Positions 2,776 to 63,814 of a DNA stretch of 64,000 nucleotides are shown here, piece after piece (the first letter of the stretch is position 1; the number at the start of each line of letters is the position of its first letter). This stretch comes from Bugula neritina (Eukaryota > Animalia > Bryozoa). Made by a program: the position numbers and the translations under genes. The stretch lies in the NCBI GenBank assembly GCA_964035545.1, contig OZ037767.1, forward strand, positions 15,318,998 through 15,382,997. Reading direction: 5' to 3'. A model generated the notes under the pieces. It saw only the letters and a list, made by a program, of their open reading frames with translations, searched no databases and was not told the DNA's origin.

Positions 2776-4420
2776 GTCACCCTTACGCTGGTTTGCAGAC
2801 GGATAATACTTGTTTCTGTGGAAGTGAGTCTGACAAGTATGGAATCGGTGAAAAAACGAGCTGCCAAGACCTTTGCAAAGGAAATACCAGTCTGATATGT
2901 GGAGGAGGCTGGAGAAACAGCGTCTATAAAATAACTGGAAAAGGTGAATAAAAAATGAACTCAAAATTAATATTGAACAATTATATTTCAATGCAAATAA
3001 GGAAAATAAAAATATTTTTGATGCTTATTTACTATTATTTTAAAGCCTAAAAATTTGTATATTTGTACCTAAATTTTAATAAGATTTTAATCGTAAAATA
3101 TGCTTAGATTTAAAGTCACTTCAACAATGTATCAAACAGCTGAATTTTGTTCAAATTATATATACTGTAGAAAAGAATGAATCTAGCCAAAGTGTACCAA
3201 GACCCATTCGCTATGTCGGCAAAATTGAAGTTGGAGAAATGACTGATGACATCATATCCTTTATTGAACATCCAACTGATTCTACTAAAATAATGGCAGC
3301 TACATCAAAACAACTTGTAGAGATCAATCATCATGGAGACTGTACAGTAGTAGCTGGTGTGCAGCTGCAAAGTTGTTTGCATACGCAAAACTCACTTTCA
3401 TTTGCTTCCATCAGCCATATTGTTTATGCTCACTTCACTGATCTGAATTTACATCACTTCCTGTTTAACAAGTCTGTCATTTTGGTGGCTGATGAAGGTG
3501 ACCATTGCATTAAATTCTTTGAATTTCAACAGAAACCTTTGTTCTCTAATCTTCAAACCTACAAAATTGGCAATTGTGGACTTCCACAAGTATCCCCTTT
3601 GTTAGCTGATAAAGTTCGACACTTTAGTGAACCTCAGGCAATCATGCTGAATAGCCCAAAACATCTTTCTCTGTACCATGACTCTGAGACTATTAGACTG
3701 GTTGTTAACTGTGTACTGACTGAAGTATACTCTGTTATTGTTAGTATCTATCCAACTCACACTGTAGCATATGAGTACAGTGGACACCCTGGGTACGTTA
3801 TTACCGACATGTTAAATCATTTTGATTTTCCAATGATGAAATCACAGGGATTTAGCAGTGTGGAAAACAAAAGTGATTTAGCAAAGGTTGATTTGCATAT
3901 TGAGGATAATCTTGGCACATTAATCGGGGTTTATTTTTATTTTTGTGAGTCAACTATTAGTTCAGAAGTTCCCAGACTGTTAGTTGATTTGCCAACAATA
4001 TTAATGAGTGGTAAAACTCAATATTTGGTTTACAATCATACTAGTCAGGAGCTGTTCATACGGAATTTACAAGTGTTACATCTTCCTCTGGAAGCGGAGT
4101 CTAAACTGAGTCAATATACTGTAGCACGTGATTCTCTCATACTCTACAGTCAAAGCCTGAAAACATTTTATTTCACAAAGAAATATTCTCAATATCAGAG
4201 AGTTAGTGAGAGTCAGTGTAGTCAGTCTACTATACAAAAGTTACAGGTGAATGGAGCTGAATCTTGTGCTTATGTCTGCTTTAAATATGGCGACCTTTGT
4301 GTTTACTTTTCATTCAATAGTGCAGACAACTTCTGTTATATTCATAATGAGGTCAGCAATACTAGTTTCATTACTACTCCAGGTTTCTACTGTTACACAT
4401 CTTTAAATTATATACTTTAA
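2776..4420 (+). pseudogene. WSC - NHL-like propeller - PAN/Apple paralogue A, 5'-truncated (exons 2776-2943 and 3171-4420; no exon 1)
   Basis: Exon 2 HPYAGLQTDNTCFCGS...CQDLCKGNTSLICGGGWRNSVY is the WSC C-terminal half, with AG/GT phase-1 splice sites. Exon 3 is open and contains ILVADEGDHCIK and a PAN-type ESCAYVC..CVYFSFN..CYIH..CY. Homology to D stops at about 2632, inside intron 1. Confidence 0.8.
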
Positions 4421-5059
4421 ATGTTTAAACAATTTGTTGGTTCTTTTAACAACGATATTATATCCCAATTTTAATTTAGTAAGTTATCACACAAATAATA
4501 ACTTATTGAATGAGTTTTATGCAAAGAACATAATATATTTCTGATGCTGGTAACATTTACAATTATATTTATGTTTACAGTCTAATATCTATGTTTCGTA
4601 CAATATTTTACACGGAGAGAAATATTAGTGCAGAGCTTGCACTAAAGTTGTTCAAAGAGCCTTTTATTGTCGGTATAACCTGCACCACACCTCTAATAGT
4701 TGTTAGACCTGCACTTATTTTGATGAAATTGAAAATTAATCCAATTAGTGTGAGCTGAAAAATATTTTGTAGTAGCTCTGAAACCACTTAGTTGTTAAGT
4801 CAACCCTACTTTTCACAGGTATTACGTAATCATCATCCCTAGGTCTGAATGAAGCTAAACAGTAGTTGATAGGAGCAGGAAGTGAGATCAATGCTACAAC
4901 TACATATGTTCAAGCAAAATTTTATTTACATAAGAGTTATGGAACAATTGGCAGTTGTTCATCTGACAACATTATTTGTTCACATGTGCACTAATGATGA
5001 TCAAAAACCTTTATAGGAAGCTAGGATAGAGTAGAACCCTACATTTGGGTCATTTCAAT

Positions 5060-8000
5060 AGACCATGTAAAACTCAGCCAATCAGCAAAGTGTACCAGGT
5101 CAATGTTCTACCATTGTAACTGATATAAAATTCTGCAAGTTCAATTGCAAAATGCTTGCCTCTAAAAGCTAGTTGTGCAACTTTTTTTTCATGCATTATT
5201 TAATTTCATATCTTAAATTGATGACTCTTGAAATGATTTTTTAAAATGTCTAAATTAAGTGTTCATAAAATGCAATTGAAAATTGCATGTCTAAAAAAAT
5301 GACCTGGTACACTTTTGCAACGTAAGGCCAATTATTACATAACTGCCAGCTTAGTAGTTATTTGTTGTTGCAACTTGAATGGGTTATTGTTTAGCCTTGA
5401 AAGCTTGTAGCAAACGTCTGTGAATTTGGTACATGACTTTGATTGGTTGGTTTTTGAATGGCCCCTTAGTATAGCCTCTGGATGGCTGGGTAGTGTAGAC
5501 TCCGCCTACATCTAGCTAATGTACAGTAGCCAATCCACAGTAGTATTACAAAATTTCTGTTTAAGAAATGAAATATTCTGGTCATTTGTTTTGTACTTTA
5601 CAATAGTAAATATTCTATTCAACTGGAATTTTGTTGTATGTAAGCCATGGGAACTACTAAGAGGTTAAATCAACCACCCATGCTGATAATATTGTAGCTC
5701 GCAGTAATAGCAAGTCTACACCATATAAATATACACATAAGCTATTATGTGCAGCTTATGAATGCTGAAATGATCCCATTTCTTACCTTCAATTTGAAAA
5801 AATTGTATTACATATTCTGCCACTTCTGCACCGAGTATGTGTTTTCCTTTTAAATTTTGAAAATAGTAGTTAGTTTCTGCAGCAGTCAACTGCATCCACA
5901 ATCAACAATTTAAGCTTTCAAATAAACTATAAATATATGAAATATTAGTGTGGAAACAATGTAATTTATTTATTGCTATGATGAAAAATTACAAGAATAT
6001 TATATAAAAGCTAGATATAGATTTCTAGTAAAATGGCACAGGTAAAAATAACACATTTTTACTTCAAATTCTAAACTTCATCAGTCACCAATGGTGGCTG
6101 TAGATTGCAGAGAGCACAGCAGACTATCATAATCATTTGGGTTACCAACGCACTAAAGCATATAATGTAAGACGCACAAAAAATATTGGTTTCAATGAAA
6201 CATGTGAAAGAAACAAACAGAAAAGTTTTCAAGAGAGTCAGCTGATATAGAGCAACAGAACTCATCTGACAGCCATCCTCATAGTCAGACTTCATCAGAA
6301 GTAACTGAGTTACCAGAATCATCAACTACTCAGAAAAGAAGATCTGCACATTCTATTGATAGACGAAAAGCAAAAGTTGGAAGAAAAAGCAACTATTAAA
6401 AAAGTAAAAGTTTTTAAAACTTTCACCACTACAGATGAGCAAACTAAATTTTTTACTGAAATACCTACACATTCTTTATACTTTTCTTTAGCAAGGTAAT
6501 AAATATTATTTTCTTATTGCAAAGATATACTATGGTATATTACAAATAAACAATGCAAGTCTCACTATGCTAAAATGTGTACATTATTGATTAAGTTTGA
6601 TGTGTATTAAAACTGTCATTTTAATTAAATTTGTTGCAGTGTGAGTGCATCATTCATACATTTTTTATTAAAAATTTTGTTTTATGTAAGATATTCACAA
6701 ATACCACAGTGGTCATCTGTATGCTTTGACTTATTTAGTTTAGGGTTTTATTTAAACAAGCAGCAGTATTTTATTTGTGGACAAATTGACTCATTTTCTC
6801 CAGGAGAAGTAAATTGTTTTGACCTAAATTTTCCTTGGCTATTTTAAAGCTTATCAAAAATAACCTCCTAATCTAATTATTAGCTGAAACTAACTCAGTG
6901 TTTAAAACTAAAATGGTTTACACTTGTTACTAGTTTCACTTACTCCCAAAATTGTTAAATGCTATTCTAAAGATAATATGGGTTTGAATTAGTTATAGTA
7001 TAATTATAAAATGAAGTAATTGTTTGTACACAGTATTTGTTTAAACTCATGACTTCATTCAAAGCCTGTATTCATACAACTAGCTTATTATGTACTATTA
7101 CAGTATTACATAACACATGTTGACACACATTACAAATTCTGTTTGGATGGTGATATATTGGGTCAGGCCTTCAGCTAGCAGTTCTTGAACTTCATAGTTG
7201 TTGCAAAATATAACTGAAGCTACTTACCGGAGGGTAAAAACTGCTGAATGAATACAAGCTTAGCACAAAATTTATTTAGCACATACATTATAATTTGAAT
7301 CATAATTTAATTTTCATTCTTTATTTACTATACTTAGATTTATATGTCCGAAGATGAAAGTTCTCACTCTCAGAAATAAGTTAACAAGGCAAGGTGAACT
7401 TTTATTGGCTTTGATGAAGCGGCGTCAAGGTTTACAGTTTTAAATAATTGCTGGCCTTTTTTATATCTCTAGATTGCTAGCAAGCAAAACCTTCAAAGAC
7501 ACATTAGATATTTTAGCAAGAGAACTACACAATCTAATACATTTTCTACCAAGAGAGAAGCTGAACATCACTCTGAGCTTTCAAAGCCAATATGCTAACA
7601 TTAGGTGCATTATAGACTGCACAGAAATATTAATTTGTAAGCCTCAATCAAAGCTGGCTCAATCTTTAACATGGAGTGAGTGTAAAAAGATCAACACCAT
7701 CAAGTATTTGGTTGCAATTACACCCAGGGGCACTATCTTTCAAAATTTGAAAGGAAAACACATTCTTGGTGCAGAAGTGGCGGAATATGTAATACAATTT
7801 TTAAAAATTGAAGGTAAGAAATGGGGTCATTTCAGCATTCATAAGCTGCACATAATAGCTTATGTGTATATTTATATGGTGTGGACTTGCTATTACTGTG
7901 AGCTACAATATTACCAGCATGGGTGGTTGATTTAACCTTAGTAGTTCCCATGGCTTACATACAACAAAATTCCAGTTGAATAGAATATTTACTATTGTAA

Positions 8001-8537
8001 AGTACAAAACAAATGACCAGAATATTTCATTTGTTAAACATAAATTTTGTAATACTACTGTGGATTGGCTACTGTACATTAGCTAGATGTAGGCAGAGTC
8101 TACACTACCCAGCCATCCAGATGCTATACTAAGGGGCCAATCAAAAACCAGCCAATCAAAGTCATGTACCAAATTCACAGACGTTCGCTACAAGCTTTCA
8201 ATGCTAAAGAAAAACCTATTCAAGCTGCAACAACAAATAACTACTAAGCTGGCAGTTATGTAATAATTGGCCTTAAGTTGCAAAAGTGTACCAGGTCATT
8301 TTTTTAGACATGCAATTTTTAATTGCATTTTATAAACACTTAATTTAGACATTTTAAAAAATAATTTTAAGAGTCATCAACTTAAGATATGAAATTAAAT
8401 AATGCATAAAAAAAAGTTGCACAACTAGCTTTTAGAAGCATGCATTTTGCAATTGAACTTGCAAAATTTTATATCAGTTACAATGGTAAGACATTGACCT
8501 GGTACACTTCGCTGATTGGCTGAGTTTTACATGGTCT
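5060..8537 (+). mobile_element. ISL2EU/PIF-Harbinger-type DNA transposon derivative with about 800-bp inverted arms
   Basis: Termini AGACCATGTAAAACTCAGCCAATCAGC / GCTGATTGGCTGAGTTTTACATGGTCT. Inserted after AT; the empty site is at 17481-17500. Arms 5060-5867 and 7732-8537 are inverted copies. Confidence 0.85.
6418..7737 (+). pseudogene. Truncated ISL2EU/Harbinger-type transposase (HTH + N-terminal part of the DDE_Tnp_4-type catalytic domain)
   Basis: Exon remnants TDEQTKFFTEIPT (about 6430), ELLLALMKRRQGL...IS (about 7400) and IRCIIDCTEILICKPQSKLAQSLTWSECKKINTIKYLVAITPRGTI. One internal stop; cut off at 7737 by the inverted arm. Confidence 0.8.
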
Positions 8538-8581
8538 AATAGACCATGTAAAACTCAGCCAATCAGCAAAGTGTACCAGGT

Positions 8582-11900: not shown

Positions 11901-14900
11901 CTGTTTCAAGATCTTATGGGTCCAGTTACATATTTCTGCAGAGTTATCAAAAAGTGGTTTGATCACTTGTTTCACTTATTAACAATGTTGTTATTTTAGA
12001 GCCACTTCTTGTGTGATATGGATTCTATAGCCACTCTCCTCTCAGTAACTTGCTCGATCTCTTGGCGATCTCACTTGTGGGACAACCTACACTAAGCATT
12101 TAATGCATTGTCATATTCAAGAAGTGTCTGAAGTGAAATCTAAGCCACTGGTAAGGTTGTATATATGTGTTTGATAGATGCAAGATAATTTTGTAGTTGC
12201 AGCAGCAGTTGTTCTGGCTTCAGTGTTAAGGAAGAATGTTTCATCATAGTTTAGCTTTAGCTTGTAATTAGCAGGAAAGTTAAATGCTTCACATATATTT
12301 TTCAGAAATGTTGTTTCTGCAAATGGTCATGTTCAACAACTTTTCATGTTTACAAGCGCCATTTGAAACACCATTTTCGACAATCCACACTTGCATTGTC
12401 TGGAGATGCTGATATCCCAGAAGTGTCTAGTTTTCCAAGTGCAGGTGAGTAATCTTCAGTCCTCCAATTGTTATTAATTCTTTGAATAAATTAGTGATAA
12501 TCCAAAAGTATAAGACAGGTCTGATTTTACCTGATACTATGAGCTATATGTAATGAAAAGGCACTTATCTTAACGTTGTTATAGTTGACTGCTTTATTTA
12601 AATATTATAGAGGCTGCTTTTTAGATGGTTCAGAGAAAACAGATATGTCCGCTACCTGATGATTAGTTTTAAAATAAATATAACAGCAGTAGCAGATCAA
12701 ATGCCTCAGATATTTTAGCCTACAACAAAACTGATTGATTGATTTATATAATAATATCTTTAAATTTTCTGCACAAACTTATATATGTATTTACATACAT
12801 ATTTACACTAGATGTTCATCATGTATTTCATTTTTCACGATATTGCAATGGTATAAGCCATAAGGCAAGGGCGATCAACTTTTTTTGAGCGAGGGTCACA
12901 GAAAAAGAATATTTAACGGTGAGGGAGGGCTACATTTTAGACTTTAGTTTAAGCTAGGGGTCATATAGTGCATGACATGCAGCACCAACATGTTGCTTTA
13001 TTCCACATTCTAATGAATCATTATACGGTTAAGTCCAAATAGTTACTGCAGGATGTATGTTTTGTATAGCATGTGTATAAATAAGACATTTAAAAAGTAG
13101 ATTTTGCTTTAATTTATTTATACACATAAAATAATTTTAGTTTTATGTCTTTAGGGGCCAAATAAATGTAGGCTGGGAGCCCTGGGGAAATGCAGCTGTT
13201 AGACAGTATAGTAAAATAAACATTTTCACTCTACAAGACCCATACCAGTTGAATTCTGCTAACTAACTGAAGATGATGTGATCCAACAACCACTGAATGT
13301 ACTTTATAGCTAGATAGAACACAAACTGTTGTATGCTGGGAAGGCATTTATACTATTCAGCTGCCCAGTCAACCAACTTCACAATGCCTTTCATATGTAA
13401 CACATTTTGTCACACTATATATGCCCACTGTAGTTTTAATTATATACATTTTCTTTTAGACTGATCCTACAATAATCTTCAACTTCTTCACGTTAAGGAA
13501 GTGAAAACAAAATTGGGAAAAACTATAAAACCATACATGTACAATTGATTTCAAATTTTCCATTTCCCTCAGGCTTCCTCCAAAGGCTACAAAGCAAGCT
13601 GATTGAACATTGCAATTAACAGTCTCATGATTTAATACATCTATATTGCTATTTTAGATAATCTGTTGGAAGACTCTGCTGTGCCTATTCCCGTAGATAA
13701 CCCGTTTCAAGAGCCGTTTAGTGGTTAGTATTTAGGCTGAGAAATAGACGCATAGTGGCAAAGTTATTTTGTTTTAAATGATATTTAGTAATTGAAACAA
13801 AAAATTTTGCAAAAGACTTTTTGACATATATATGTGTTCTAGATGATTTATTATTATAGGAGATTTAAGAAGCTCCTCTGCTTGATTACAAGACTTCTTG
13901 TGCATCAGCAATCAAATAATTTTCTTCCTAATTATTTCTTAGTTATGTAACGTTATGTACGTTTCACCTTCCAGGTGTGACATTCTACATTTTAAGTTCT
14001 ACATTTCGTATTCTAAATACCGTATCATATTAGAGGTAATGTTTTATACATTTTAGTAAAGTGATCGTAATATCACAGCTTTGCACTTGAAGTATAAATT
14101 TTATAAGAATATAACATGTTATAAAATTAGTTGGGTGATGAAGTTTGAAAATGTACAATATAGCATGAAGTTTTTAATTATTCTAGTATTGATGAGCCAT
14201 GAGTTTATTTTACAAGTTGTTTTTATTATGAGCTGATACATTTTTTATAAGCTGTAAAAGTGTTAGGATTGTTAGAATAACAAAAAAATAGTTTTTCTCT
14301 GTAAATTATTAAAACGAGATCTTGAAATTATTAATTTAAAGTTTTTTAGGAGTTTATTCAAACTTAATATATAGTTTTAGAAAATAGGTTTAATAGTTAT
14401 CATCATGTTTAACTTGGAAACCAAAAAAACTTTTATTTAATAATACATTTCAAAATGTTAAGATATTATTCTTTACTAAAATGCCTATACTGTATAAGGT
14501 AATAACATTTTGCAAATTGTCATTAGCAGATGACAAATGAAATACCAATACGTTCTTATTTACAGTATAATGGTTTCATCCCAGCTTGATATAGACGCAA
14601 TTTTTTATTTTGGTACCATATAGTTATATAGTAATATATTATAGCTATAATATATATACCTATATAACTGTTGTATTGATTGCTAAATAGCTAAAATACT
14701 AATAGCCATATTACAATAGGTAACATGAATTATCTGAAATAATGTTCTAATTTTCACAGATTTGTGTGGGACAGAAAATAGTATAATAGACATTAATAAT
14801 AGACATTACCTTTAATTAATGACTATACTCATTAACTAAATATCTGTTCAAACAAGGAGCAAAATGTATTCAAAATTGATGTTAATGCAAATCAAAGAAA

Positions 14901-15079
14901 TTAATAATGTGCTAAATATGTGCTTCATTTAAATATACATATATATTTCAATAATATTAAAATAAATTGCACATAAAATATATATTATACCAAAATAAAT
15001 AATTAGCGTCTAACTGAGAAGCGTCTATCTAGGATAACACCAAAACAAACTGTTTTTATTACTACCAGCTGTCTAGAAG

Positions 15080-15236
15080 ATGCATCAATATCTGATGTGT
15101 ATAGCACCGGTTCCTATAGTTTATGGTTCAGTGTACATGGGTTGTTACAAGGACACCTCAACTAGAGCTCTACCATTGAGGTATGATTCTAATGACATGA
15201 CAGTCGACCTTTGTATTGGCTACTGCATTTACAGAG
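15080..15236 (+). pseudogene. Paralogue B: orphan exon 1 (signal peptide + WSC N-terminal half); exons 2-3 deleted
   Basis: MHQYLMCIAPVPIVYGSVYMGCYKDTSTRALPLRYDSNDMTVDLCIGYCIYR is nearly identical to D exon 1. At about 16278 the intron joins directly to the 3' flank normally found about 35 bp after the stop codon. Confidence 0.85.
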
Positions 15237-15497
15237 GTTAGTATTCCATTCACTTACTAAGTTGATTTTTTACAATATAGTGAAATTACAACCTATGAAG
15301 CAGAGCTAATAAATTAGCCATCAATTTAGGAGTAACTCACAATATCTTGAAACTTCAAAGGAATTGCAATTATCCTGACATAAGATTGCTACATACTTAT
15401 ACGTAAAGTAATTGCTGTGCTTGCTTTAAAGTTTAGACATTTTACCTGAGCTACAGGTATTTAAATAGGGCCATGCAGTTGGTATCTATAGCATAGT

Positions 15498-15665
15498 AAG
15501 TCGCAGTGGTCTAGGGGTCAGAGTGTTTGCCTACAAGTAAGCACAAAGTAATGAGTTTGAGCCCCATTGTAAGGCAGTCGTGATGTTGGGAAGAGCATCC
15601 AGTCATAATTGCTCCTGTGCCTCATATGAATAAGTCTTAAGCCAGCTTTAACAAAAACCCCTTCT
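15498..15665 (+). mobile_element. tRNA-derived SINE in intron 1 (also at about 33638-33803)
   Basis: A-box-like gtggtctagggg and B-box-like gagtttgagcc, followed by a ggaagagcatccagtcataattgctcc body. Does not fold into a complete tRNA. Confidence 0.55.
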
Positions 15666-20178: not shown

Positions 20179-20181
20179 CAG

Positions 20182-48105: not shown

Positions 48106-48385
48106 TGCCGTGTTGTCAGCTTGAATAGCTTGGCAACTCCTAATTCAGTTACCTCGTAGAGATTTATGGTAGTGAATAGTCAGATAGAACACGTATTGCA
48201 ATGAGATTATAAAAATCTCTAAGTCAAACTGAGTTCTTACTACGGTATTTCACTAACCTATCTCCAGCTCGGTTGACTCAGTGAGTCAGAGCTGAGCGAT
48301 GCAATCTAGTTTCGTATTAAGATATAGTTAACTCACCCCACGATCTGTTGTCGTAAGACATACTGAATGTGTGAAATGGTTTGAA

Positions 48386-50387: not shown

Positions 50388-50448
50388 CTCGGATCGTGGG
50401 GGACCTCCATCCCTCCTCTCGATGTTGAGACACTGTTTGCAACCTCCG

Positions 50449-53019
50449 TCAAGGTCGGCGACTCAACCCATCTGCATTGCTGTGTCTCTTGCCCGGTCGA
50501 TGTTCGATCCGGTATGAGAATTCAGCTAGGATTTCGAGCCACCGGGCGACCTGACTAGAGGGCTCTGCTCTCTTGCACAACCAGATCAGCGAGGCATGAT
50601 CCGTACGCAGCCGGAACTTCCTGCCATATAAGTATGGTCTGAAGTGCTTCACTGACTTTATTACTGCCAGCAGCTCTTTGCGGGTAGTGCAGTAATTTCG
50701 TTCAGTGGGTGAGAGAGACTTGCTGTAGTAGGCTACTACTACTTCTCGGCCTTCCTGCACTTGTGACAGCACAGCGCCAACATTTTGGTCACTGGCGTCC
50801 GTGTCGAGGATGTACTCCAGAGTGGGGTCTGGGTAGGCCAAGATGGGCGCCGTTAGTAGGCAGCCCTTGAGGCGGTCGAACGCTTCTTGTTCGACTGGGG
50901 TCCACTGCCACGTCACTCCCTTTGCGGTGAGCCGGTTTAACGGCTGTGCTATGCCCGCAAAGTCTGGTATGTATTGTCTGTAATACCCTACCAGCCCCAA
51001 GAAAGCCCGGAGTCCGGTCAAGTCTTGGGGGGTGACCCAGTCTTCTACTGCCCGTACCTTCTCGGGATCCGTTGCCACGCCATTTCGACCGACAACGTGC
51101 CCCAGGTACTTAACCTCTGGCTGCAATAGAGCGCACTTAGAAGGCTTGAGCTTAAGACCGGCACCTCGGAGTCTCTCAAAGACCTCCTGCAGACGACTGA
51201 CATGTGTCTCGAAGTCTGGGGAGATCACGATGACATCATCGAGGTAGATCAGCAGTGTCTTCCAATGGAGCCCGCTGAGGACTTGCTCCATCAGCCTCTG
51301 GAAGGTGGCTGGGGCGGAGGTCAACCCGAAAGGCAGCACCTTCCACTTCCACAAACCGTCCCGTGTGATAAACGCCGCTTTCTTTTGGGCGTCGGGACTC
51401 AGAGGAACTTGCCAATAGCCGCTTAGCAAGTCTAACGTACTGAAGTACTTGCTGCCAGCTAGGGCGTCCAATGACTCGTCAATACGAGGTAGAGGGTAGG
51501 CGTCCTGTATGGTTACGCTATTGAGTTTGCGGTAATCTACACAGAACCGCCAACTGCCGTCTTTCTTCCGGACCAGTACGACTGGTGAGCTCCACGCGCT
51601 ATGGGCGGGCTCTATCAGTCCCTGGTCCAGAAGATCCCGTACTTTTCGGCTAACCTCCTTCTCTTTCTCCAGCCCCAGCTTGCGTGTGGGCTGCCGGACA
51701 GGGACTGTCCCTGCAGTCAGCGGTATTTCGTGTCTGACAATTCCAGTCAGTCCCACGTCATGCTCTCCGCTGCTGAACACATCACCGTAGTCGCGTAGTA
51801 ACTTAGCCATAACTTGGCGTTCTCTGTTACTCGCGCAGCTGCTACAGGCTGTGTCATACAACTCCCGGAGATGTGCGGGGACTGCCCCTCGCCCTTGACT
51901 AGGGCACTGAGGGAGTGCCTCTGTCGCATCACCCAGCGACGGGCCTACGTCTTCCTCCTGAACAGAGTGAAAACGGCCCAGCATCGACCCAGCCGGGAGC
52001 TTGATAGGCTCGGTAAAGGGGTTGACGCACTGCACTAAGATCTCCCCTTGCTCAGTCAGTTGATTCAGACTGCTGGCAAGTTGGATCTTTTCGTGCGCGC
52101 CTTCAACTACCCCAAGTCCAGAGATCCGGCTATTATTCACCCTGCAGTGAATGGTAGCCCGGGAGCGGCCTGGTATGATACGGTTGCGTACCACTTGCAC
52201 ACCTCCCACTAGAGGGCGGCCGAACTTGTCGACGCAGGCGAGTTCCCTCCCGGACATCATCATTGCAGATCTGCTAAAATCTATGTGACATCCGTGCCTT
52301 TTTAGGAACGGCATCCCGAGGATAGCATCCTCCTTGAGCTGACTGACGATGAATGTCTCTTGGATCGTTTGATCACGGACTCGTCCCGTCAGCTCAATTA
52401 TACCATAGAAGGGAAGGCACGACCCGTCAGCTAGGGTGCCGTATTCCCCTTCGTATGATTCCATCTCGCCCCTGACCCTAGCACTGAGGGTGTCGAAGAG
52501 TTGGCGGCTTAAGAGGTTTGTGGTACAGCCCAAATCAATGAGGAACGTAACAGCTTTGCCTTCCAGTTTACCGGGCAAGAAATAGCTGTTCCAATGGGGC
52601 TGCACCTGAACTCTCTTTTCAGGCCTTACTCTCGCAGGGAGTACCTCCCTCGCTTTGGGTCGCGAAGGAGGTCTCTTGGGGCGGTGGTAGGTAGGCTTCA
52701 GGGGTGCCGAGGCTAGATTCCCGGCTACCTTTGTGGGCTCCGATCCAGATTCTTGGACTTGTAGCCCTGTGAATCTGTTGTGAAGGGGCATAGAAAAGGC
52801 AGCCGCGGGGCGAAGCCCCTTGCTGGTCCGTCGTGGCTGTTGCCACTGTTGGTTGCCAGTACGCGGTACCCGTCTGGGTGACCTGCGTTTCTTCTTCCCT
52901 GGGGGTTTCATCGTCGGCCCGCAGGAGGTGGGAACATCTGCGGGCCGCGGTAGTTTAACCCCTGATTTAGGAAGGGACAGTATCGGCGGAAATGCCCTTG
53001 ATTTCCGCACTCCCAGCAA
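50449..53019 (-). CDS. pol: Gypsy pol: aspartic protease, reverse transcriptase, RNase H (premature stop before integrase)
   Basis: FLIDLGC (non-canonical D-L-G), WRFCVDYRKLN, LPFGL, YLDDV, LDTDAS, KELLA, TDH, NADGLSR. Confidence 0.95.
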   Translation of the reverse strand: MLGVRKSRAFPPILSLPKSGVKLPRPADVPTSCGPTMKPPGKKKRRSPRRVPRTGNQQWQQPRRTSKGLRPAAAFSMPLHNRFTGLQVQESGSEPTKVAGNLASAPLKPTYHRPKRPPSRPKAREVLPARVRPEKRVQVQPHWNSYFLPGKLEGKAVTFLIDLGCTTNLLSRQLFDTLSARVRGEMESYEGEYGTLADGSCLPFYGIIELTGRVRDQTIQETFIVSQLKEDAILGMPFLKRHGCHIDFSRSAMMMSGRELACVDKFGRPLVGGVQVVRNRIIPGRSRATIHCRVNNSRISGLGVVEGAHEKIQLASSLNQLTEQGEILVQCVNPFTEPIKLPAGSMLGRFHSVQEEDVGPSLGDATEALPQCPSQGRGAVPAHLRELYDTACSSCASNRERQVMAKLLRDYGDVFSSGEHDVGLTGIVRHEIPLTAGTVPVRQPTRKLGLEKEKEVSRKVRDLLDQGLIEPAHSAWSSPVVLVRKKDGSWRFCVDYRKLNSVTIQDAYPLPRIDESLDALAGSKYFSTLDLLSGYWQVPLSPDAQKKAAFITRDGLWKWKVLPFGLTSAPATFQRLMEQVLSGLHWKTLLIYLDDVIVISPDFETHVSRLQEVFERLRGAGLKLKPSKCALLQPEVKYLGHVVGRNGVATDPEKVRAVEDWVTPQDLTGLRAFLGLVGYYRQYIPDFAGIAQPLNRLTAKGVTWQWTPVEQEAFDRLKGCLLTAPILAYPDPTLEYILDTDASDQNVGAVLSQVQEGREVVVAYYSKSLSPTERNYCTTRKELLAVIKSVKHFRPYLYGRKFRLRTDHASLIWLCKRAEPSSQVARWLEILAEFSYRIEHRPGKRHSNADGLSRRP

Positions 53020-53323
53020 AAACTGACTGTTTCTCCCTGTGGCGGCGCCGGTGGCCGCATGGGCTCAGGGGCGGTACTCACTGGGGTTTATGGTGTCAGA
53101 GTTGCTATCAGCTTGGCTAGCATGTCTGTCAGTTGAGTGACTTTCGATGCCGTCGCCAACTGGGACACGGCAGCCGCGGTGGGGGTTTCCTCCCCTTGTC
53201 CCGCGGCCGTGTCCGCGCGGTCTATCTCCACTTGACGGGAGCTTCCGCGAATTTTATGCATTTGATTAGCTAGGAGGTAAGCTTCCCCCTCAGTCAGAGC
53301 ATCTTCAACGGTGGTGACTCCCC
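52908..53323 (-). pseudogene. gag: gag, C-terminal part, with CCHC zinc knuckle
   Basis: GVTTVEDALTEGEAYLLA continues HQFLAR from 58746; CWECGNQGHFRRYC near 53020-52980. Contains one frameshift and one stop. Confidence 0.85.
52915..52959 (-). promoter_or_regulatory. Putative gag-pol -1 ribosomal frameshift signal
   Basis: Heptamer G TTA AAC (52959-52953) in the gag frame, 5-nt spacer, and a perfect 10-bp stem CGGCCCGCAG/CTGCGGGCCG. Pol is in the -1 frame and gag stops at 52910-52908. Confidence 0.75.
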
Positions 53324-56300
53324 CACAGCTTGATTAAGGTCATCCTTCTACTGAATCAGTAATTTCATTGCTCCATTATAATTATATATGAAACAGTGCC
53401 CCACTCATAACTCGACTAATTTTGAGGCTAGAATCAAAATTCAAAAACCATCTTGTAAATATTTTGCTGTTCTATTAGAGGCTTTTTTAAAATCTTCACT
53501 TACCCAACCCGTTGCATTTTTATGCTCCAAAAACAGTCAAAAATTGCCCATTTTCGCATAAAAAAACATCGTCTCAGTGCCCCACGAATTATTCAATTCC
53601 CAAGCAACACATCTCTGCAAAAATTGAAATATAGGGTTATAAGATATTTGTCTATTAGAGGCTTTTTAAAGTTTTCAGATAACCTAAATAGAATTGGTGT
53701 AAACGTGTAATTTATACACTGATTTTATTAAAAATTTTACATCTCGCTTAGTCTGCACGCTTGGCTGAACACGGTAGAGCTGCGCTGCATTGTAGCCATC
53801 ATAATGATTACAGGGAGCTTATGCGGCCTACGATCCATGTTTAACCAAAGGGTTAAAGTTCATCTCTGCAGTAAACTGCGGTATGGGTAAAAGGCGGTAT
53901 GAGGCTGGTTATTATATTATAATAGCTAGTAGTTGGAATCTTGGTGGTTGCAATATTGTTGTACTGCCTATAGACCCGAGGCTGTACAATGCGCAATCTA
54001 CCCTGAATCTAGATTTCAGTTGTATTTATATGAAGCAGTTTCTGAAGCCTGCGCACATTTCTTGCTTTGACTTGTTTCTTTCTAGTGCAAAGCAGTTTAG
54101 TAATACAGCCTGTATGATAACCCAGACATCTTAGGATGCTAGTGAGAGTTAAGGCCACTAAATTTTATGCCTTTTGTGTGTGATTTCAATGCAAATTTGT
54201 TGTTCTGTAGAGTAATCTAAATTATACTAAAAATATATCTGTAACCAAACTCACTGTATTGTTATTTTAAAACATTAACTTTTTTTCAGAATCTACAAAA
54301 TTGTTGGAGAGAATTCTTAGTCAATTGAATAGTAACTGCATAACTTTCTTTCAACAATAGTAGTAAAGTCTTATCAGCTAAGTATAATAAGTATGAGGTA
54401 TGTGCAGTGATGAGGGTATTGAGAAATTAAACCCTGCATTTCGTATTATTGGGCCTATTACAGGCGGTGAGATGCAGCTTAAAAAGTTTAGAGAGAATTC
54501 CGACATGTTACCAAATTAGAATTTCTTTAAAAAATTTAAGAATTTAGGCTGTTGAAGCTTTTCTGCTTATATCGCACCTACCAGACAACTTTGTTTATAA
54601 TATTATGGTATTAAAATTCTGGTATTAAAATTCTGGTAGCTTACAATTAAATAAGTCAGTTCTGATTGATAAATAGTGCTTGCACGTAGGAGGCTTGTTA
54701 TATGTAGCAGGCTTGCAATAGCAGTAAGCCATTTTGCTAATGGCTCTGGCAGTGACCATGCAAGCCATTCATAGGCAGTGACAAGGTGCTGCTATTTTTA
54801 GCTGAAATGAGCTCATGGTTTGAACTTAAATGCCCAACTAGACTACTCGTCAATAAGGAGCAACTTAGGCAGGTTATTTTATATTGCAATACGGTTTTAA
54901 TTACAATTAGCTTTAAATAGCCAATTATGTGACCAGATTCAGCATGATGTAATATAAATGGGTATTTAATTTCACAATTTCTTTTGGACCTAACTGAATC
55001 TCAAATAACTGTAACTATGGGGTTCTATAAGCATTTGAGTACAAGTTTCTTTACACATATACTACTCATTTCCTTTACTGCTTACACCAATTCATAACAT
55101 TGGTAGCTAACTATAGGTAGTGCACTTTCAGCCTACTAGCTTAGTTATAATAGCTTCACTGCGGTTTCAAGCTAATGCCAGTAGCAGACATTGGAATAGC
55201 TTGTTTGTATTGAAGATGTGACTTCTAATCTAATTAGGTTATAACTAAAGGAGTGGAGTGTAGTTGTGGTATTATGAGGGGGTGTTCAAAGTTTTATCAA
55301 GTTTTTAAAATAATAGTAAAATAAATAAATAAGTAAATAATAATCTATAAAACAATAGGTTTTATTTTACATATAAATGACTAAAACGTATGCTATCATA
55401 ATGCTTTCAAAAAAGCACATAGAACGTTTATTATAATTCACATTCACCCCCCCCCCGAAAACCTACCCTAGTCATTCCAAAGCTGCAGTGCACTGTCCTC
55501 AAACAAACTGCTCTGCAAAATATCATGCGTAGCTGTAAGCGTTACTTATCTTGCCCGATTGGATATGTTCCTAGTAAAAGCTAGCTCGGTAAATAAAAAA
55601 TTCGATGTTAAAACGCAGTCTGTGAAGTGAACTTGCCAACTGGCGGTGGGAATATCATTTCAAAATGGAGTGAAAAACGTCTTTTACCTCTCAAACCTAG
55701 GATGAAAGAGTGTACTTTGATTAACTTTAAGAGTTTAACTTCAAGGGTAAGTGAGTACCACTGCTTCCTTCAGCAAATTCGCATATTTCATATTGCTTTC
55801 AAGCAATAATATATTTATTTTTAATTAATTTTATAGGATTTGTATAGTTGTACTATTAGTATTACAGTAGACCTATACTGCGTATTATATCTATTATTAA
55901 TATTATATTCATATTCATATTATTATTATTATAGCATTGCACAGTATAACTAAACTTCAAAATTGAGTTTTATATTCATAAAAAAGGCATAGTATAATAA
56001 GAATGCATTGATGGTAGAACTATTACTAAGACTGTAAGACTAGATCAAAATTCAAATTGTCAGAGTTCATTTTATCATTAATGATTATGTAAGAAAAATG
56101 GCCAAATTTATTATTGACTCACTTTTTTCTCCAATTATTTAGAGTGCTGTAGTTGAGTAGGCACATAGAAAATATAGTTTTGCACTAAAAATCTTCTGTT
56201 TAGTAACTCTCATTGTACCACTACTTGCATACCAAACTACATTTACTGTGAGTGACCAACTTAAAATACATTATAAGCATATGTTTCAAAATAATTGGAG

Positions 56301-58745
56301 TCATCACGGCAATCATATCTACTAAGAAATTATTTGAAAAATACAATTTCAAGGGAGCATCCAACCTAATAGTAATTGTAATTATGAGCTGTGTTTTTTA
56401 AAAAGTTACCAGCAGGCAGCTTTGATCTGATTACAGTATAGGTAGATTTTACAAAATATAGATTACTATAGTACTATAAACTGTGGTGTATGAACATGTT
56501 AATTCAAATTCAAAATGTTGCAAATTACTTTTCAATGTATTGAGAAAACTGCTATTTATATTTTTAGATTGAGTTCCAAAAACAAGTGGGCTACTAGATG
56601 ATTAGGTTTTGTCAAAGAAATGCTATAGCATGTATACTCAGGACATCCTTTCTATGTCAGCATCAGCTCTTAGGATCTTTAAATTCTCTACTCTTGCAAG
56701 ACGATATATTTTTATGTTAAAAAGCATAATACTCTACAACTGACACCTATATATCAAGACTCTATCTGCAAAAATAGGACTTTTATCAACGGATATAAAA
56801 ACTAAAATTATTAATATTTGACAAGACTAATCACCCCAGCAATGTGCCTTTTAGTTAGGCTTTTGCAGCTTGAATTTTTATAGATTCTGCTTTTCTACAA
56901 AATCAGTTTTGACATTCAATATTGTAATGTATGTTTAAAAAAGTAATTAGGAAACTAACTTATTATTTCCCCCATGTTTGTAATATACTTATTGGATGTA
57001 TTGCTATAAAAAGGCCTGACTTATTCCTTCACAATAGTACACAGCTGTTACAACTTCTGCATGTTTACATTATTTATTGAACTTGCTACTTTTATGCCTG
57101 ACCATACGTATATATATTATATTATGTTTGAAAATCCACAAGGATTTTAGTTTTCATCTTTAGCAATGGCTATCTGGTGTTAACTTGAATAAAACTGGTT
57201 GATTTGTTGCATATGCCTAAATTATTAAGTCAATTCTTGTTATGGAATATTATAACTGCAGCATCAGAATAATGGAAAATGCATTGCTAATTATATCTGA
57301 GCTGATTAACTGACACCTATCAGGCCGGAAACAAAACTGAATTCACTGGACATCTTCTTTCATCTTAAGGAGGTTTTCTCTTCAAATTTTCAATTCTTGC
57401 CTAGCTAAGATTAAAACTATTCATCTTGGATGTTTCACTCAGGCAAGCATAGTGTCAGTCAGTCTAACTAGACGCAGCATTTTCTATTAGATGCTAAATT
57501 TAGAAACATAAAATAGTTGATGATCTTGGCTCTGAGTTGGTATACAGCAAGCCGATGATATCATGCTTGAGTGAACACTGAGCAGCTATGATAACCAACT
57601 ATTGATAGTAGCTGCCAGGAGTACAAAAGAGCCCAGTTGTTAGCTGGCCTCAAATTTATTTCTCAGTGCAAGGCAACAAGATACAGCTCATAGCCAATTT
57701 TTGGACATTTAGCTAGAAGCCATTTAGGCTTGATTGGACCTTTTAAAGTTTAGACTGCATGTATACAACAGAGAGCAAATAGAATATATTTAAAGCACAG
57801 GCTCACGGTCTAACCTTTTATATAGTTCCAAGTTCCAACTCACTTCAACACTACAAGTGTTGATTAATGCTTATACTAATGTACAATGGGACCACAAAAG
57901 TGCCTACTGGCTATATTTGAAACTTGCAGCAATCAAATCCTTTACCCAAACCATCTAAACTCAAAGTGGCCACACAATATTCTGCATATCTGATCTTTAC
58001 AACTACCAACAAAATCTCACACATGACTATCTGACCTATAAGCAAGTCTCTTTACTATTCTAAGCTATTGTGCTGAGTCTGTAATTGATTGTAATAGTTT
58101 AGCACTGAGAAGTGTTTTTGCAACTAGAAGAGGATTTTAATGATGAAGGAAATTTTGGCTTTAAGTTAGTCAATGGTAGTGAACAGAAAGATTATTAGTC
58201 TAGCCTAAAAACATTATGCTTTGAGAGAAGAGCATCTCTAAATTATTTGTTACGGCTGCCTTTTACATTATTTAAACAATATCTGCATTAGAATTTCGAA
58301 AGTTGTAGTCAAGCCTGTAATTATTAAAAACTTTATTAGACTAGGCAAATGGATGAATATTGAGTTAGCTTTAGCATTTAGCTTGCTTCCATAATCTATA
58401 GAATAGTTTTACATGGTTTGTTGAAAAAGAAGTTACGAAAATTATCTTCCTTTGTACATCAAGTACATTGCACATGAAACGAACCACTGGTCTCTTGTAA
58501 TAATAATAATGAGGTGATGCTGAGGTTAGCAATGACCACATACTTGCTCAATAGATTGTTGCGATGGTTGTAATGCGAACAGGTGCAGCCCTAGCTAATT
58601 TGATGATCTGTTGGCAATTGTTCAATCTCATGCTAAATTATGACAAGTAGGCAATACGCATGCCGCCCACAGAGCAATAACAACTAGGAACTGAGACTAG
58701 ATTATGAGATGATATTTTACTGGGGATGACCTTAACTATGCTGTG
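53324..58745. mobile_element. Non-autonomous EnSpm/CMC-type DNA transposon (5422 bp) inserted in gag
   Basis: Imperfect 22-bp TIR CACAGCttgaTTAAGGTCATCC / CACAGCatagTTAAGGTCATCC and 2-bp TSD CC. Removing it restores the gag frame FLAR|GVTT. Confidence 0.88.
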
Positions 58746-59285
58746 CCTAGCTAGAAACTGGTGGTGGAGACCCAGATCGTCGACAGATGCTATGAAAGCG
58801 TCGAGGGTATACCTCTCGCGGTTGACTGGGGGCAAGTCGCTGTACGCGATCTGTGCCAGCTTCATGACCGCGGCGGCGTGCTCCCGCAGCGGGGTGCGGG
58901 GATCACGCCGCAACCTCTGCAATCGGGCCCTGGCATCTGTAGCAGAGAGGCCGAAGCGGGCCCGCAGAGAAGCAAAGATATTATCAATGTCTACGCCCAG
59001 CCCATAAGGCTTGGCTTTGTCTATCAATGCCATTCTAAGCTTCAGCAAGGCCACCCTAGGGGGCCACTGGGCGACATCCATTACGTCGCTAAACTCTTGG
59101 ATAAATTGTTCCACCTCCTCTTCACCTGTGAAGGTGGGCGCCTCTAACCGGTAGCGGTCTTCAGTTAGTTCTCGCGGAACCCTTCGCTCTTCTACTACAT
59201 GGTTAACAGGCATTGTCTCTACAGCATTGTCTCTACGCTCACCTTCTATTGCCGGTGGTTGAGTTCCAGCATTTTCAGTCTCCAT
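58746..59285 (-). CDS. gag: gag, N-terminal part (capsid-like), interrupted by DNA transposon
   Basis: ATG 12 nt after the PBS; LEAPTFTGEEEVEQFIQEF..W..LRARFG..ARLQRLRR..AY..DAFI. Confidence 0.88.
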
Positions 59286-59297
59286 CTTGGATGCACT

Positions 59298-59315
59298 ATC
59301 CCACTGCTGCCACCA
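59298..59315 (-). promoter_or_regulatory. Primer binding site complementary to tRNA-Leu 3' end
   Basis: TGGTGGCAGCAGTGGGAT, 1 nt inside the 5' LTR; complement ATCCCACTGCTGCCA-CCA resembles eukaryotic tRNA-Leu(AAG/TAG) ends. Confidence 0.85.
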
Positions 59316-59316
59316 C

Positions 59317-59621
59317 TGTTAAGTTTTTCAGATTTAGGGTTGATGTGCTATCCAGAGAGTCTATTTATTTGCTATAAAACTGCACCAGGATAAGTCGAGT
59401 GAACGAGTATATTTTACACACAATTATACATTATAAAAACGATACATTATATTCAAACAAGTTACACATCTAATCTATTTGACACTCTAGCTTCGACTGC
59501 CTTAGCAGCGGGAAACTGTAATTGCTGCTAACTATCAAACACGCTAATTGGCTATCCATTGTTCCGGGTCAATTACGCGACCCTACATGTTGTGCTGCTG
59601 GTAGTTCCACGAACCACCACA
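59317..59621 (-). repeat. 5' LTR of G2
   Basis: Direct repeat of 46693-46997. Confidence 0.97.
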
Positions 59622-60345: not shown

Positions 60346-63300
60346 CTAAACGAGCGCATAGCAAGTAGAACTTGAAGAATTTTCGAACACAACTGAAACC
60401 TCATTATGAATATAACACTTAGCTGTAGAGGTTATTGAAAATGCTGCACAATTTTCATATTGCACACTGCAAGCGTAGGCACATGATTCTATTGAGAGCT
60501 GTTTGAAAACCCCAACAGATTTACTGCTACACATGTGATCAGGTAACGCTGAGAATCTTTTATGCTTTGGATGACTCATGTAGTAAACAGTTTGAGAAGT
60601 TTTGCTGTAGACGAGGAAATTATTCTCAGTTGATGTGGCGGATATGAGGTCAAGGTCAGTGTTCAGACCAATCACCACAACATCTACTAATCCAACATGG
60701 CCGCTACTCACTTTAAATCTCTTCAGTTTTCCTTTGTTTACAATCAGCTGTTGCCCATCCACAACAACAGGTATGCAATTGTTGCTGCACTCAAAGCTGA
60801 CAGTGTTGGTGTTTCTGTGAACTGAAGATTTAGCTTCGCATGTTTTAATTTCACCCGTAAGTGAAACAACTCCAAATGAATGAGCTGTTGGATAATGAAA
60901 GTTGTTGGCAAAACCAGTTATAAAACCAAACTGAACACCGTAGTAGCCATGTATAATAAAATACGAGGGATAGATGTTTACCATCACGGAATAAACATTA
61001 TTGTTTTTCACACAATTAATTATTAGTCGAGTGACGTCTGCAAAGTATAAAATTGCCAGGTGAGTTGGTGAATCAAGTCTAATGTCAGAGATTCGAGAGT
61101 ATGTTTGATATGCAATGAGGGTACCTGCTTCACCGCATTTACCAATCATAGCATAGTTTACATTTAGTAGGTCAGCAAGATCTATTGCTTTTATACAGTG
61201 CTCTGATTGGTCGGCGACAAAAATAAATTGTTTCTTGTGAGATTGTAAATGGCTGAGTTTAGACAGGTTTGCAAAAATAATATGACTAATTGAGGTAAAT
61301 GTGTAGGAATTTTGCATATAGGCACAACCTTGTAGCTGCACACCAGCTACTACTGTACAGTCTCCATGGTGATTGATCTCTACAAGTTGTCTTGATGTAG
61401 CTGCTATTATTTTAGTAGAATCAGTTGGATGTTCAATAAAGGATATGATGTAATGATCAGTCATTTTCTTGACCTCAATGTGACTAGTGACCTGGTAAGG
61501 AGTGCTGATTGGACCATCTGCCGAATCAATTATTAAACTTTGACCTACAAATAGGTACACATTGTATAAAACTCAGGTAGGTTTTATATATCTGTAAAAA
61601 CTGCTGATGGAAAAGCTTTTTAAACGGACTAAAGTATTGTTTTTTATCAGGGCACAAGGGCAATTATGACTAACATGCGTTACCAATACAGTATTTATAA
61701 CAGGAAGTTGCTGTTTATAACCCATATATATAGTAATAATATATTCAGCAATTTTAGCAATTTATAAAACCAAATTGAAGAATTTTATCCTGCAGTATTG
61801 CTGTAATTCTCCGTAAGTTTTGTTAGTTTGTTGAAACTTCATCTTTTTGTATATCTATAATACTTTAAACAGACATTACATATGACTTGAATATTGATTA
61901 GCGCTATACATGAATTAGCTTAGGACTTGTTTGACAAAGATCCAATTCAATAATTAAATTATAATTATGTGTTAAATATTGGACTATGATATGTTCAAAT
62001 TTGTTTTATTATGCTAAAACTTGTTTGATTTCATGCAATTCCAACATTCTGGCCTCTAATGTAAATTTGAACAATTTTTATCATATCAACAAAGCGCTTA
62101 TATAATGCAATAACTACATTCTTAGCAAAATGGCAACTTTCGAACGTGAGAAAATGAGTTTATTTGATTTTTAAAAAACTGTAACAATAAACATTTCCTT
62201 GATAGCACTTTTGCAATATAGAATATTTAATTTAACTTGCGGTACCTTATATGGACTGCGGTAGATATTGTATGAGTTAAGTTTTTTTTATACTTTAACA
62301 ATTTCTAGTCAGAAATTCAATGTTGCAGAGTTAAAATTTCTTCAAGTTGCATTGCATTATGAAAGTCACTCGTAAAAAAACTTAATCGGCCGAGTTCAAA
62401 TTAACAATCAAAAGGAGCAATAACTTTTTGTAAACATCATTATTTAGTTCTGACTTGAGCGACTATAGATGACATTCTAATATGTTTATAAATATATTGC
62501 CAACGCTTTCCCAATTATCACTTTTATGCTGTCAGCTTTGTTAGTTCAGGACGTTTTCAAAGGAAGTGAAATAGCAACTTTCTTCTATAATATTATAGTA
62601 ACATGCTCTGATTACAAGTCTATGATCTAAACTGCGAAATGTTATGGTTACACAGATTGTGAATTTAAGTTGCATGGCAGGAACAAATATATAACAACTT
62701 TTAGAATATATGCTTGTCTATTAATACTGGTCTTATAAAACACCAGTCTTATATTACTGGTCTTATAAAACACCAGTCTTATAATAATTACTGGTCTCAT
62801 AAAGCTGGTCCTATTAAACTCCTCCTATAATATAATACCGGTCTTCTTAAAATGAGCTGGTCCCATAATACTGGTCCTATAATATATACTGATCCTACAT
62901 TACCAGCTATAGGCCTATAGTAAACTAGTCCTATATTACTTATATAGTCCTACATTACTGGTCCTATATAATACAATAAACTGGGCCTATATAATACTAG
63001 TCCTATAGTGTTGGTGCTACAATACTGCATGGTTTTATAATAAGCTGGTCTCATAGTACTGGTTCTATTAAAATGGCTCCATAACATTGGCCCTATCACC
63101 CACAATATATCTATAAAAATAATTGATTTATATATTATATATAGCTGAATAATTAGTATATCATAGTTTATTATAAATAGAAACAATAACAATTAATTTG
63201 AAGGACAACTGTTTATAAACCAATCACATTACCTGGGAAAGTATTGTAGATACTGTTCCTCCATGTTCCACCACACATTTGACTACTGTTCCCTCCGCAT

Positions 63301-63814
63301 GCTCTACGACACTCAGTTTCCCCTACTTCACCATATTTGCTGTATTCAACACCACAGTAACACTGGTCAGTAGATTGTACTCCTGCATATGGCTGCCCTG
63401 AAATTAGTAATTTGCTAATTGATCTTTATAAATATAACAACACGATAAATCACAAAACACAATTTTTTTGTAGTTCAGCTACAATTGGCAGATTCAAGCT
63501 TATATTCCTTTGTCGTGTTAAAATGGAAGAATACTGAAATCGATGAAAATTAAAAATGAACGTTTTCAAAGAATCAACATCATTATCGGGTATAGTAGGT
63601 TCTTACACAATACTTTTGGTATACTGCAGTTATTTTTGAAAACAGTTATAAAAAGATTTACCTTGCATAGTGCAGTAGCCAATACAAAGCTCTACGGTCA
63701 TGAAATGAGTAAAAAATGCTATGGGTAAGGCTCTGTTCCTAGAGTCCTTGTAACAACCAATCAGCTGGTTGAGAGTGTACACCAGATGCCAACACAGCCA
63801 GAGTTGCAGAAGCA
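60346..63814 (-). CDS. WSC - NHL-like - PAN/Apple paralogue E, divergent (exons 63814-63662, 63397-63233, 61544-60346); start codon not visible
   Basis: LLQLWLCWHLVYT leader, LIGCYKDSRNRALP..LCIGYC, QPYAGVQSTDQCYCG..CGGTWRNSIY, open exon 3 with IFVADQSEHCIK and ESCAYACSVQYENCAAFSI..CYIH; same intron positions and phases as D. Confidence 0.88.

Follow-up and report, generated by a model that had tools for sequence, protein, structure and literature searches.

In the fungal AA5 copper radical oxidases, PAN_1 or WSC modules precede a seven-bladed propeller, and the WSC module of PorAlcOx acts as a tether to chitin, glucan, and xylan (PMC11611005). The WSC fold is homologous to that of PAN modules (PMC5014086). 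We examined a 64,000-nucleotide stretch of the Bugula neritina genome (GenBank assembly GCA_964035545.1, contig OZ037767.1, forward-strand positions 15,318,998 to 15,382,997; hereafter the window), in which five related units, designated A to E, belong to a gene family whose predicted products carry, behind a putative signal peptide, a WSC domain, a propeller, and a PAN-type module in that order. This is a new domain arrangement built from known modules, in a lineage-restricted family whose members are found in databases only as uncharacterized proteins. The reading we favor, and hold to be somewhat probable, is that the window contains a tandem cluster of bryozoan-restricted, secreted, lectin-like binding proteins evolving by duplication, decay, and conversion. 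Bryozoa are poorly studied, and we know of no bryozoan immune, recognition, or cuticle-matrix gene family that has been characterized.

The likeness of the bryozoan family to the AA5 oxidases is one of analogy, not homology. Both are secreted and both join PAN-fold binding modules to a propeller, but the AA5 propeller is seven-bladed and catalytic, with a copper site and a Cys-Tyr cofactor, whereas the bryozoan proteins are of animal origin, have another propeller type with no catalytic set, and follow the order WSC-propeller-PAN. With the NHL propellers of Brat, the TRIM-NHL proteins, NHLRC2, and PAL, the bryozoan family has in common about six predicted blades, and a VADxxxHCI motif and blades 1-2 can be aligned; it keeps recognizable NHL sequence in only about two blades, however, and misses the Pfam NHL cut-off. 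The TRIM-NHL proteins are cytoplasmic RNA binders, whereas the bryozoan domain would be extracellular, disulfide-rich, and flanked by WSC and PAN. The extracellular WSC domain with its eight-cysteine pattern also occurs in other animal proteins, among them Kremen1/2 (Kringle-WSC-CUB). It is all that the bryozoan family has in common with Kremen, which sits in the membrane as a receptor, carries Kringle and CUB domains, and lacks a propeller. The PAN/Apple adhesins, including the N domain of HGF and plasminogen and the apicomplexan microneme proteins, are matched by the bryozoan C-terminal module with its six conserved cysteines, although in the bryozoan proteins the PAN is a single terminal module on a propeller. 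The Alr genes of Hydractinia, likewise a colonial marine invertebrate, also form tandem clusters with pseudogenes and segment exchange (PMC9546547). The Alr proteins are membrane-bound members of the immunoglobulin superfamily, whereas the bryozoan family has an unrelated fold and is without demonstrated hyperpolymorphism or positive selection.

The architecture is seen most fully in copy D, which spans 33224-36215 on the forward strand, starts with ATG, and has GT-AG introns; its 523 codons agree exactly with the protein length given in an earlier interpretation made from the DNA letters (hereafter the sequence-only reading). Exon 1 of D (33224-33380) begins with a hydrophobic leader, read as a short signal peptide, and continues with the N-terminal half of the WSC domain, which covers profile positions 1-35 and scores 23.2 bits in both D and B. 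The domain is split by a phase-1 intron, and its C-terminal half is encoded by exon 2 (34577-34744). Exon 3 (34969-36215) encodes a variable linker of about 25 residues between the WSC domain and the propeller, the propeller itself (exon-3 residues ~12-336), and the PAN-like part (~340-410). The exons were searched singly against Pfam. The Pfam gathering scores are 27.8 bits for WSC (PF01822), 21.4 bits for PAN_1 (PF00024), and 20 bits for NHL (PF01436). Exon 2 alone passed the WSC cut-off in D (39.7 bits), C (43.5 bits), E (36.4 bits), and A (32.4 bits), in each case over profile positions 40-82. Of the eight WSC cysteines of D, exon 1 encodes three and exon 2 the other five. No typical hydrophobic span indicative of a membrane anchor was found, the 19-residue Kyte-Doolittle maximum of 1.77 falling within a beta-strand.

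The middle region was modeled with AlphaFold2 on exon 3 using 32 family sequences, an earlier model from an eight-row alignment (predicted local distance difference test score, pLDDT, 33) having been discarded. The model had a pLDDT of 79.6 and a predicted template modeling score of 0.78, and contained about 26 strands over residues 12-336, which were read as six four-stranded blades with an N-terminal strand closing the ring. All 50 listed Foldseek matches in the PDB were propellers, with probabilities of 0.99-1.0, and the best template modeling scores to the target, 0.52-0.56, were obtained with the NHL domains of Brat and NHL-2 (Brat 0.53-0.56, at a root-mean-square deviation of ~7.5 A). 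A profile of six sequences matched the NHL domain of Brat (E 1.2e-4), NHLRC2, and TRIM3 around the motif ILVADEGDHCIKFF, and the 32-sequence profile also matched Brat, TRIM2/3, and NHLRC2. Alignment against an NHL-repeat protein with hhalign covered blades 1-2 only (E 9.4e-5, probability 58.7%), and bacterial and protist NHL proteins matched the VADxxxHCI motif in 5-6 stretches. These results support a cysteine-stabilized beta-propeller of about six predicted blades, closest to the NHL domain of Brat, and the NHL-like propeller proposed in the sequence-only reading is supported, as a predicted fold, by the model, the Foldseek matches, and the profile matches to Brat, TRIM2/3, and NHLRC2.

The Foldseek matches included PAL and virginiamycin B lyase, and the overall architecture is analogous to that of the fungal AA5 oxidases (PMC11611005), which would be in keeping with a carbohydrate-anchored enzyme, that is, a catalytic propeller like those of PAL, virginiamycin B lyase, or lactonases tethered by WSC and PAN. 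Across the 32 family members, invariance or near-invariance in the propeller is confined to cysteines, Gly, Pro, Phe, and a single Asp in the NHL motif, and we found no conserved metal-binding or catalytic residue set. Because no catalytic residue set is conserved, we regard an enzyme as extremely unlikely and rejected this possibility.

The C-terminal part of exon 3 was recognized by its family-wide matches. PAN_1 was matched by 20 of the 32 family members at E <= 0.01 (best 4.2e-6), and positions 331-390 of the 32-sequence profile matched the PAN (N) domain of HGF (E 8.2e-4), the microneme PAN/apple proteins, and plasminogen. Six cysteines are invariant in this part among six close members. 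Residues 340-410 of the AlphaFold2 model consist of strands and one long helix. These matches support the assignment of a putative PAN/Apple-type module. With the Pfam WSC scores, the Foldseek propellers, the PAN_1 matches, and the match to HGF, the secreted WSC-propeller-PAN architecture put forward in the sequence-only reading stands, as does the remark that it was not recognized from characterized proteins, named relatives being solely "hypothetical" or "uncharacterized".

A profile search with the propeller region alone against 1.84 billion representatives gave 31 matches, about 25 of them family members of ~400 residues and the remainder generic NHL-repeat proteins matching one motif five or six times. 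The named members were Bugula neritina hypothetical proteins, two of which lie on one 78-kb contig, and one uncharacterized protein of Watersipora subatra, in which the WSC domain is contiguous with the propeller. No family member from a named non-bryozoan was among the 31 matches, the other members lying on unnamed metagenome contigs. A word search with the Watersipora protein returned only the query itself and one WSC-only match. Two scans of metagenome contigs, with protein patterns and with a conserved 29-nt pattern, gave nothing, the collection evidently being without Bugula samples, and our literature search found no paper describing the family. Judged by these sequence matches, the family is apparently multi-copy, clustered, and bryozoan-only as far as named sources go.

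A word search for close relatives matched only three JGI orthologues, on contigs whose names include AY690838, under which the mitochondrial genome of Bugula neritina is deposited. These contigs align to the window through introns and flanks at 78-85% identity and are therefore taken as orthologous loci of a sister lineage. In this sister species there is a one-to-one orthologue for each of the A/D, C, and E types. The most distant relative (contig L007) keeps the layout of two WSC exons upstream of a large exon. The same layout of WSC exon 1, WSC exon 2, and one large exon is found in a second B. neritina cluster on VXIV02002990.1, at 1389-22279 (L005) and 48220-69107 (L006), which has at least five copies in both orientations, several of them with frameshifts or truncations. 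This second cluster adjoins a neurotransmitter-gated ion-channel gene.

Within the window itself, the five units were identified by comparing the window with itself in tblastn and blastn searches, with tblastn E values of 1e-60 to 0 that put the similarities well outside chance, and by exon translation. Reading of splice sites and translation showed a three-exon plan with both introns in phase 1 and at homologous positions in all copies. The sequence-only reading, whose outer limits at 2776 and 63814 proved to be exon boundaries, had likewise described five paralogues of shared exon-phase structure, and self-comparison and exon translation agreed with it. The copies differ in their state of preservation, and of those within the window only D is secure as an intact gene.

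Copy C has the same 523-codon layout as D on the forward strand. Its exon 1 (27256-27418) has an ATG, a hydrophobic leader, and WSC profile positions 1-35, exon 2 (27812-27976) gave the WSC score of 43.5 bits, and exon 3 (28591-29834) is broken by a single in-frame TGA at 29262-29264, codon 334 of 523. This is the copy with a nonsense codon recognized in the sequence-only reading. The orthologue of C (L004) has CGA at this codon and an open reading frame. Long (AT)n/(TA)n microsatellites flank C at 26970-27219 and ~29974-30110, the first ending 37 bp before the start codon, and the orthologous contig L004 ends in a comparable tract.

Copy E lies on the reverse strand, with exon 1 at 63815-63662 (leader and N-terminal half of the WSC domain), exon 2 at 63397-63233 (36.4 bits), and exon 3 at 61544-60346. 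Its 505 codons are open throughout, and exon 3 has ~36% amino-acid identity to A/C/D outside the conserved segment termed block I below. At the family start position (63813-63815, reverse strand), E reads GTG, with a TAA in the same frame just ahead, in place of the ATG of C, D, B, and the orthologue L001. The sequence-only reading had considered two copies apparently intact; because of the GTG after an in-frame TAA, this holds securely for D alone, and E is open but doubtful at its start. An AG just upstream of the GTG is a possible acceptor for an unseen 5' exon. The ATG is also missing at that position in two of four E-related B. neritina copies (the minus-strand copy of L005 and the second copy of L006), and the copies without it have either lost their starts recurrently or use an upstream exon.

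Copies A and B, both on the forward strand, had been taken for two fragments. Copy A has exon 2 (2776-2943), which encodes the C-terminal half of the WSC domain and has an AG acceptor and a GT donor in phase 1, and an open exon 3 (3171-4420; 415 codons) for the linker, propeller, and PAN module with 90% amino-acid identity to D. No exon 1 of A was found in positions 1-2700 of the window. The homology of A with D breaks off at 2632, and a repeat that also occurs in intron 2 of E starts there. The exon 1 of A may lie beyond the window edge, and A, perhaps shortened by that edge and by repeat insertions, may not be a true fragment. Copy B has exon 1 alone (15080-15236; signal peptide and N-terminal half of the WSC domain), with ATG and GT donor intact and one amino-acid difference from exon 1 of D. 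The duplicated unit carrying B (13958-17039) joins the 5' region and intron 1 straight to the 3' flank; by blastn, 13958-16278 matches D 32100-34421 at 91.5%, and 16280-17039 matches 36254-36995 at 90%. Exons 2-3 of B have been cleanly deleted at a microhomology junction.

The complementarity of A (exons 2-3) and B (exon 1), whose breakpoints in intron 1 lie no more than ~15 bp from a common point, could suggest an assembly artifact in which the two halves of one gene were misplaced by misassembly or by uncollapsed haplotypes. We consider this very unlikely. Separate copies of the 3' flank (93% identical) accompany A and B, B has a microhomology deletion at its junction, and the junction of A adjoins a repeat that is also present in an intron of E. 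The ~8% divergence from D and the distinct structures also argue for real paralogues.

The repeat at the junction of A is ~1.4 kb long and probably a transposable element. Its copies, at 1265-2632 and 61741-62999, are 79-85% identical, one directly upstream of the truncated intron 1 of A and the other within intron 2 of E, and part of it is also present on the sister-species contig L003. A PIF/Harbinger-like DNA transposon remnant (5059-8538), with inverted terminal repeats of ~810 bp (5059-5867 versus 8538-7732; 95% identical) and a truncated DDE_Tnp_4 open reading frame (ORF; 7474-7935), is inserted in the 3' flank of A relative to that of B, in which positions 17490 and 17492 are adjacent.

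Divergence among the copies is patchy, as the sequence-only reading had described. We compared exon 3 by Nei-Gojobori estimates of the proportions of synonymous (pS) and non-synonymous (pN) differences and of the ratio of non-synonymous to synonymous rates (dN/dS). Block I, in blade 1, encodes DIISFIEHPTDSTK...GVQLQGC and lies at 35046-35174 (forward strand) in D. It is near-identical DNA in A, C, D, E, and the three orthologues, with 5-9 differences per 129 nt in any pair of these seven sequences, paralogues and orthologues alike. In block I, pS is 0.07-0.13, versus ~0.77 elsewhere between E and A/C/D, where synonymous sites are near saturation (P 1e-14). Block II, in blade 3, is alike between C and A/D, with a pS of 0.10 versus 0.60 (P 1e-8), and is unlike in E. 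Between A and D, identity is 93-99% in intron 2 and over most of exon 3; exon 2 has a pS of 0.29, and blades 4-5, a variable region at 35583-35945 (forward strand) in D, have 79-85% identity with a pS of 0.25 and a pN of 0.13. The A-D divergence in exon 2 and blades 4-5 equals that of either copy from the orthologue in the other species (Fisher P 8e-6, synonymous sites).

Since synonymous differences are elevated in the variable patches as well, with pN/pS ~0.5, the mosaic is best read as the product of short-tract gene conversion or recombination among paralogues and not of positive selection. The differences within block I are star-like in pattern, which fits homogenization until about the species split. 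In the copies of the second B. neritina cluster, block I has only ~72% DNA identity to the window copies, which places those copies outside the conversion group. Block I may also be conserved by DNA-level constraint. As regards RNA structure, there was no Rfam match in the window, and the RNA fold predicted for block I did not surpass those of shuffled sequences (z 0.39); an explanation in terms of RNA structure is therefore unsupported and was rejected.

In a quick maximum-likelihood tree, A and D together were sister to the orthologue L001, the C type came next, and the E type grouped with the second B. neritina cluster. This topology indicates that the subfamilies are older than the species and that only the A/B/D triplication, whose members are 91-93% identical and arose after the split from the sister species, is recent. 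Since three subfamilies have one-to-one orthologues, turnover has been modest. The clustering and pseudogenes behind the birth-and-death evolution proposed in the sequence-only reading are real. Local duplication gave rise to the A/B/D triplication, and copies have decayed by deletion, repeat insertion, and point nonsense mutation. Short-tract conversion, as we read the mosaic, preserves the likeness of blade 1 throughout the copies and of blade 3 in A/C/D, and exon 2 and blades 4-5 have stayed old and divergent.

These comparisons bear on a further proposal, according to which the cluster would be a diversified system for immunity, symbiont recognition, or allorecognition whose variable blades provide specificity kept by selection and shuffled among paralogues. 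Bugula is colonial and passes a bacterial symbiont on vertically, which would suit such a system. Also consistent with it are the tandem clustering, the pseudogenes, the second cluster in B. neritina, the binding-type domains, and the mosaic of conserved and divergent segments, which is consistent with exchange among paralogues. The B. neritina genome and symbionts have been described (PMC7576161). Against this proposal, dN/dS was 0.31-0.54 in the three orthologous pairs and 0.46 for A-D, and it stayed below 1, at 0.3-0.55, in all regions and pairs, blades 4-5 between orthologues included. In blades 4-5, pN/pS was ~0.45-0.55, and pN between orthologues (~0.09-0.11) was not above that of other non-block regions. 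The divergent patches are also raised at synonymous sites, three subfamilies are kept one-to-one between species, and neither a membrane anchor nor a signaling domain was found.

Selection on the coding sequence is thus purifying to relaxed, not diversifying, and given dN/dS of 0.3-0.55 everywhere and three one-to-one orthologues, diversifying selection is not demonstrated. The patchy hypervariability of the sequence-only reading is real, but with synonymous sites affected too and dN/dS of 0.3-0.55 it gives no sign of diversifying selection. The candidate diversified system is a hypothesis that found no positive support: no region or pair, including blades 4-5, had an excess of non-synonymous change. 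We therefore consider a diversified recognition system improbable. A more detailed form of it, in which blades 4-5 and the C-terminal WSC half would be the reshuffled specificity of self/non-self or symbiont recognition, blade 1 would dock a common partner, and a role as alternative first exons or conversion donors would fall to orphan exons such as B, we regard as quite doubtful.

Returning to the lectin-like reading, WSC and PAN modules of characterized proteins bind chitin, beta-glucan, xylan, galactosides, or proteins, and PAN/apple modules bind proteins or carbohydrates. The WSC domain of a fungal oxidase binds xylan and chitin/beta-1,3-glucan (PMC11611005). On these grounds, and since the WSC domain is structurally of PAN type, a lectin-like recognition or bridging protein is favored. 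From its domain content, the product would be a soluble extracellular lectin-type binding protein. Its PAN-fold end modules, WSC and PAN, would attach to polysaccharide or glycoprotein surfaces, perhaps those of microbial walls or of the chitinous cuticle of the animal itself. An additional face would be provided by the propeller, with an invariant part in blades 1 and 3 and a subfamily-specific part in blades 4-5.

Several observations weigh against this reading. The expectation of ligand binding comes from the domain families alone. The signal peptide was called by eye and not by a predictor. PAN_1 scores just under the Pfam cut-off in D (19.6 bits) and A (20.4 bits versus 21.4), and E has no Pfam PAN match. 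The best NHL score, a single repeat in C, was 13.8 bits against the cut-off of 20 (E 0.064), and the blade count is taken from the strand pattern of a predicted model in which blades 4-5 have a pLDDT of 45-70. D is the only demonstrably complete copy in the window, and the word searches yielded no close relative's protein derived from a spliced transcript.

The main alternative to a lectin-like protein is a structural, cuticle-matrix, or adhesive family in which WSC and PAN would anchor in chitinous cuticle or in a larval or adult adhesive and the propeller would be a scaffold. Secreted, cysteine-rich, lineage-restricted products of tandem duplicates, such as these, are common among invertebrate matrix proteins. 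The chitin and beta-glucan binding of the characterized fungal WSC (PMC11611005) would suit such a role as well. The bryozoan proteins, however, have no low-complexity or repetitive matrix-like regions, and the presence of subfamily-specific blades beside a strictly conserved blade 1 points to specific partners and not to bulk matrix. We give this alternative a small but appreciable chance.

The rest of the window is AT-rich (25-37% G+C) with the exception of a G+C-rich retroelement. This is a Ty3/gypsy-type long terminal repeat (LTR) retrotransposon at 46693-59621 on the reverse strand, with LTRs of 305 bp (46693-46997 and 59317-59621; 99% identical) and an interior of up to 54% G+C versus ~30% in the host DNA. 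A gag-like ORF lies at 58638-59285, and pol is split into separate ORFs for protease, reverse transcriptase, and RNase H (50449-53019), integrase (49281-50387), and the C-terminal SH3 part of integrase (48386-49348); a further, unassigned ORF is found at 47290-48105. About 5.6 kb of lower-G+C DNA, possibly a nested insertion, separates pol from gag. On the reverse strand there is also an ankyrin-repeat ORF of 317 amino acids (42592-43545; Ank 2e-29) made of 117-nt (39-residue) tandem units that are 79-84% alike. Beside it is a Pro/Gln-rich ORF (40924-41712, reverse strand) with no Pfam match, and the two may be exons of one gene. A tandem array at 38688-39189 has a 29-bp unit in 17.3 copies with 93% matches.

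The cluster thus documents a secreted family of known binding modules in an order undescribed for any characterized protein, for which we supply a structural model, and it clearly illustrates gene conversion acting blade by blade within a propeller gene. A role in immunity or allorecognition is hypothetical, and the selection data lean against a diversified recognition system. If the recognition reading were nonetheless true, the family would be a bryozoan counterpart of a self/non-self or symbiont-recognition system. Bugula is the source of the bryostatin symbiosis, and the proteins encoded here are candidates for glycan binding, for microbe or symbiont recognition, or for cuticle biology in this animal.

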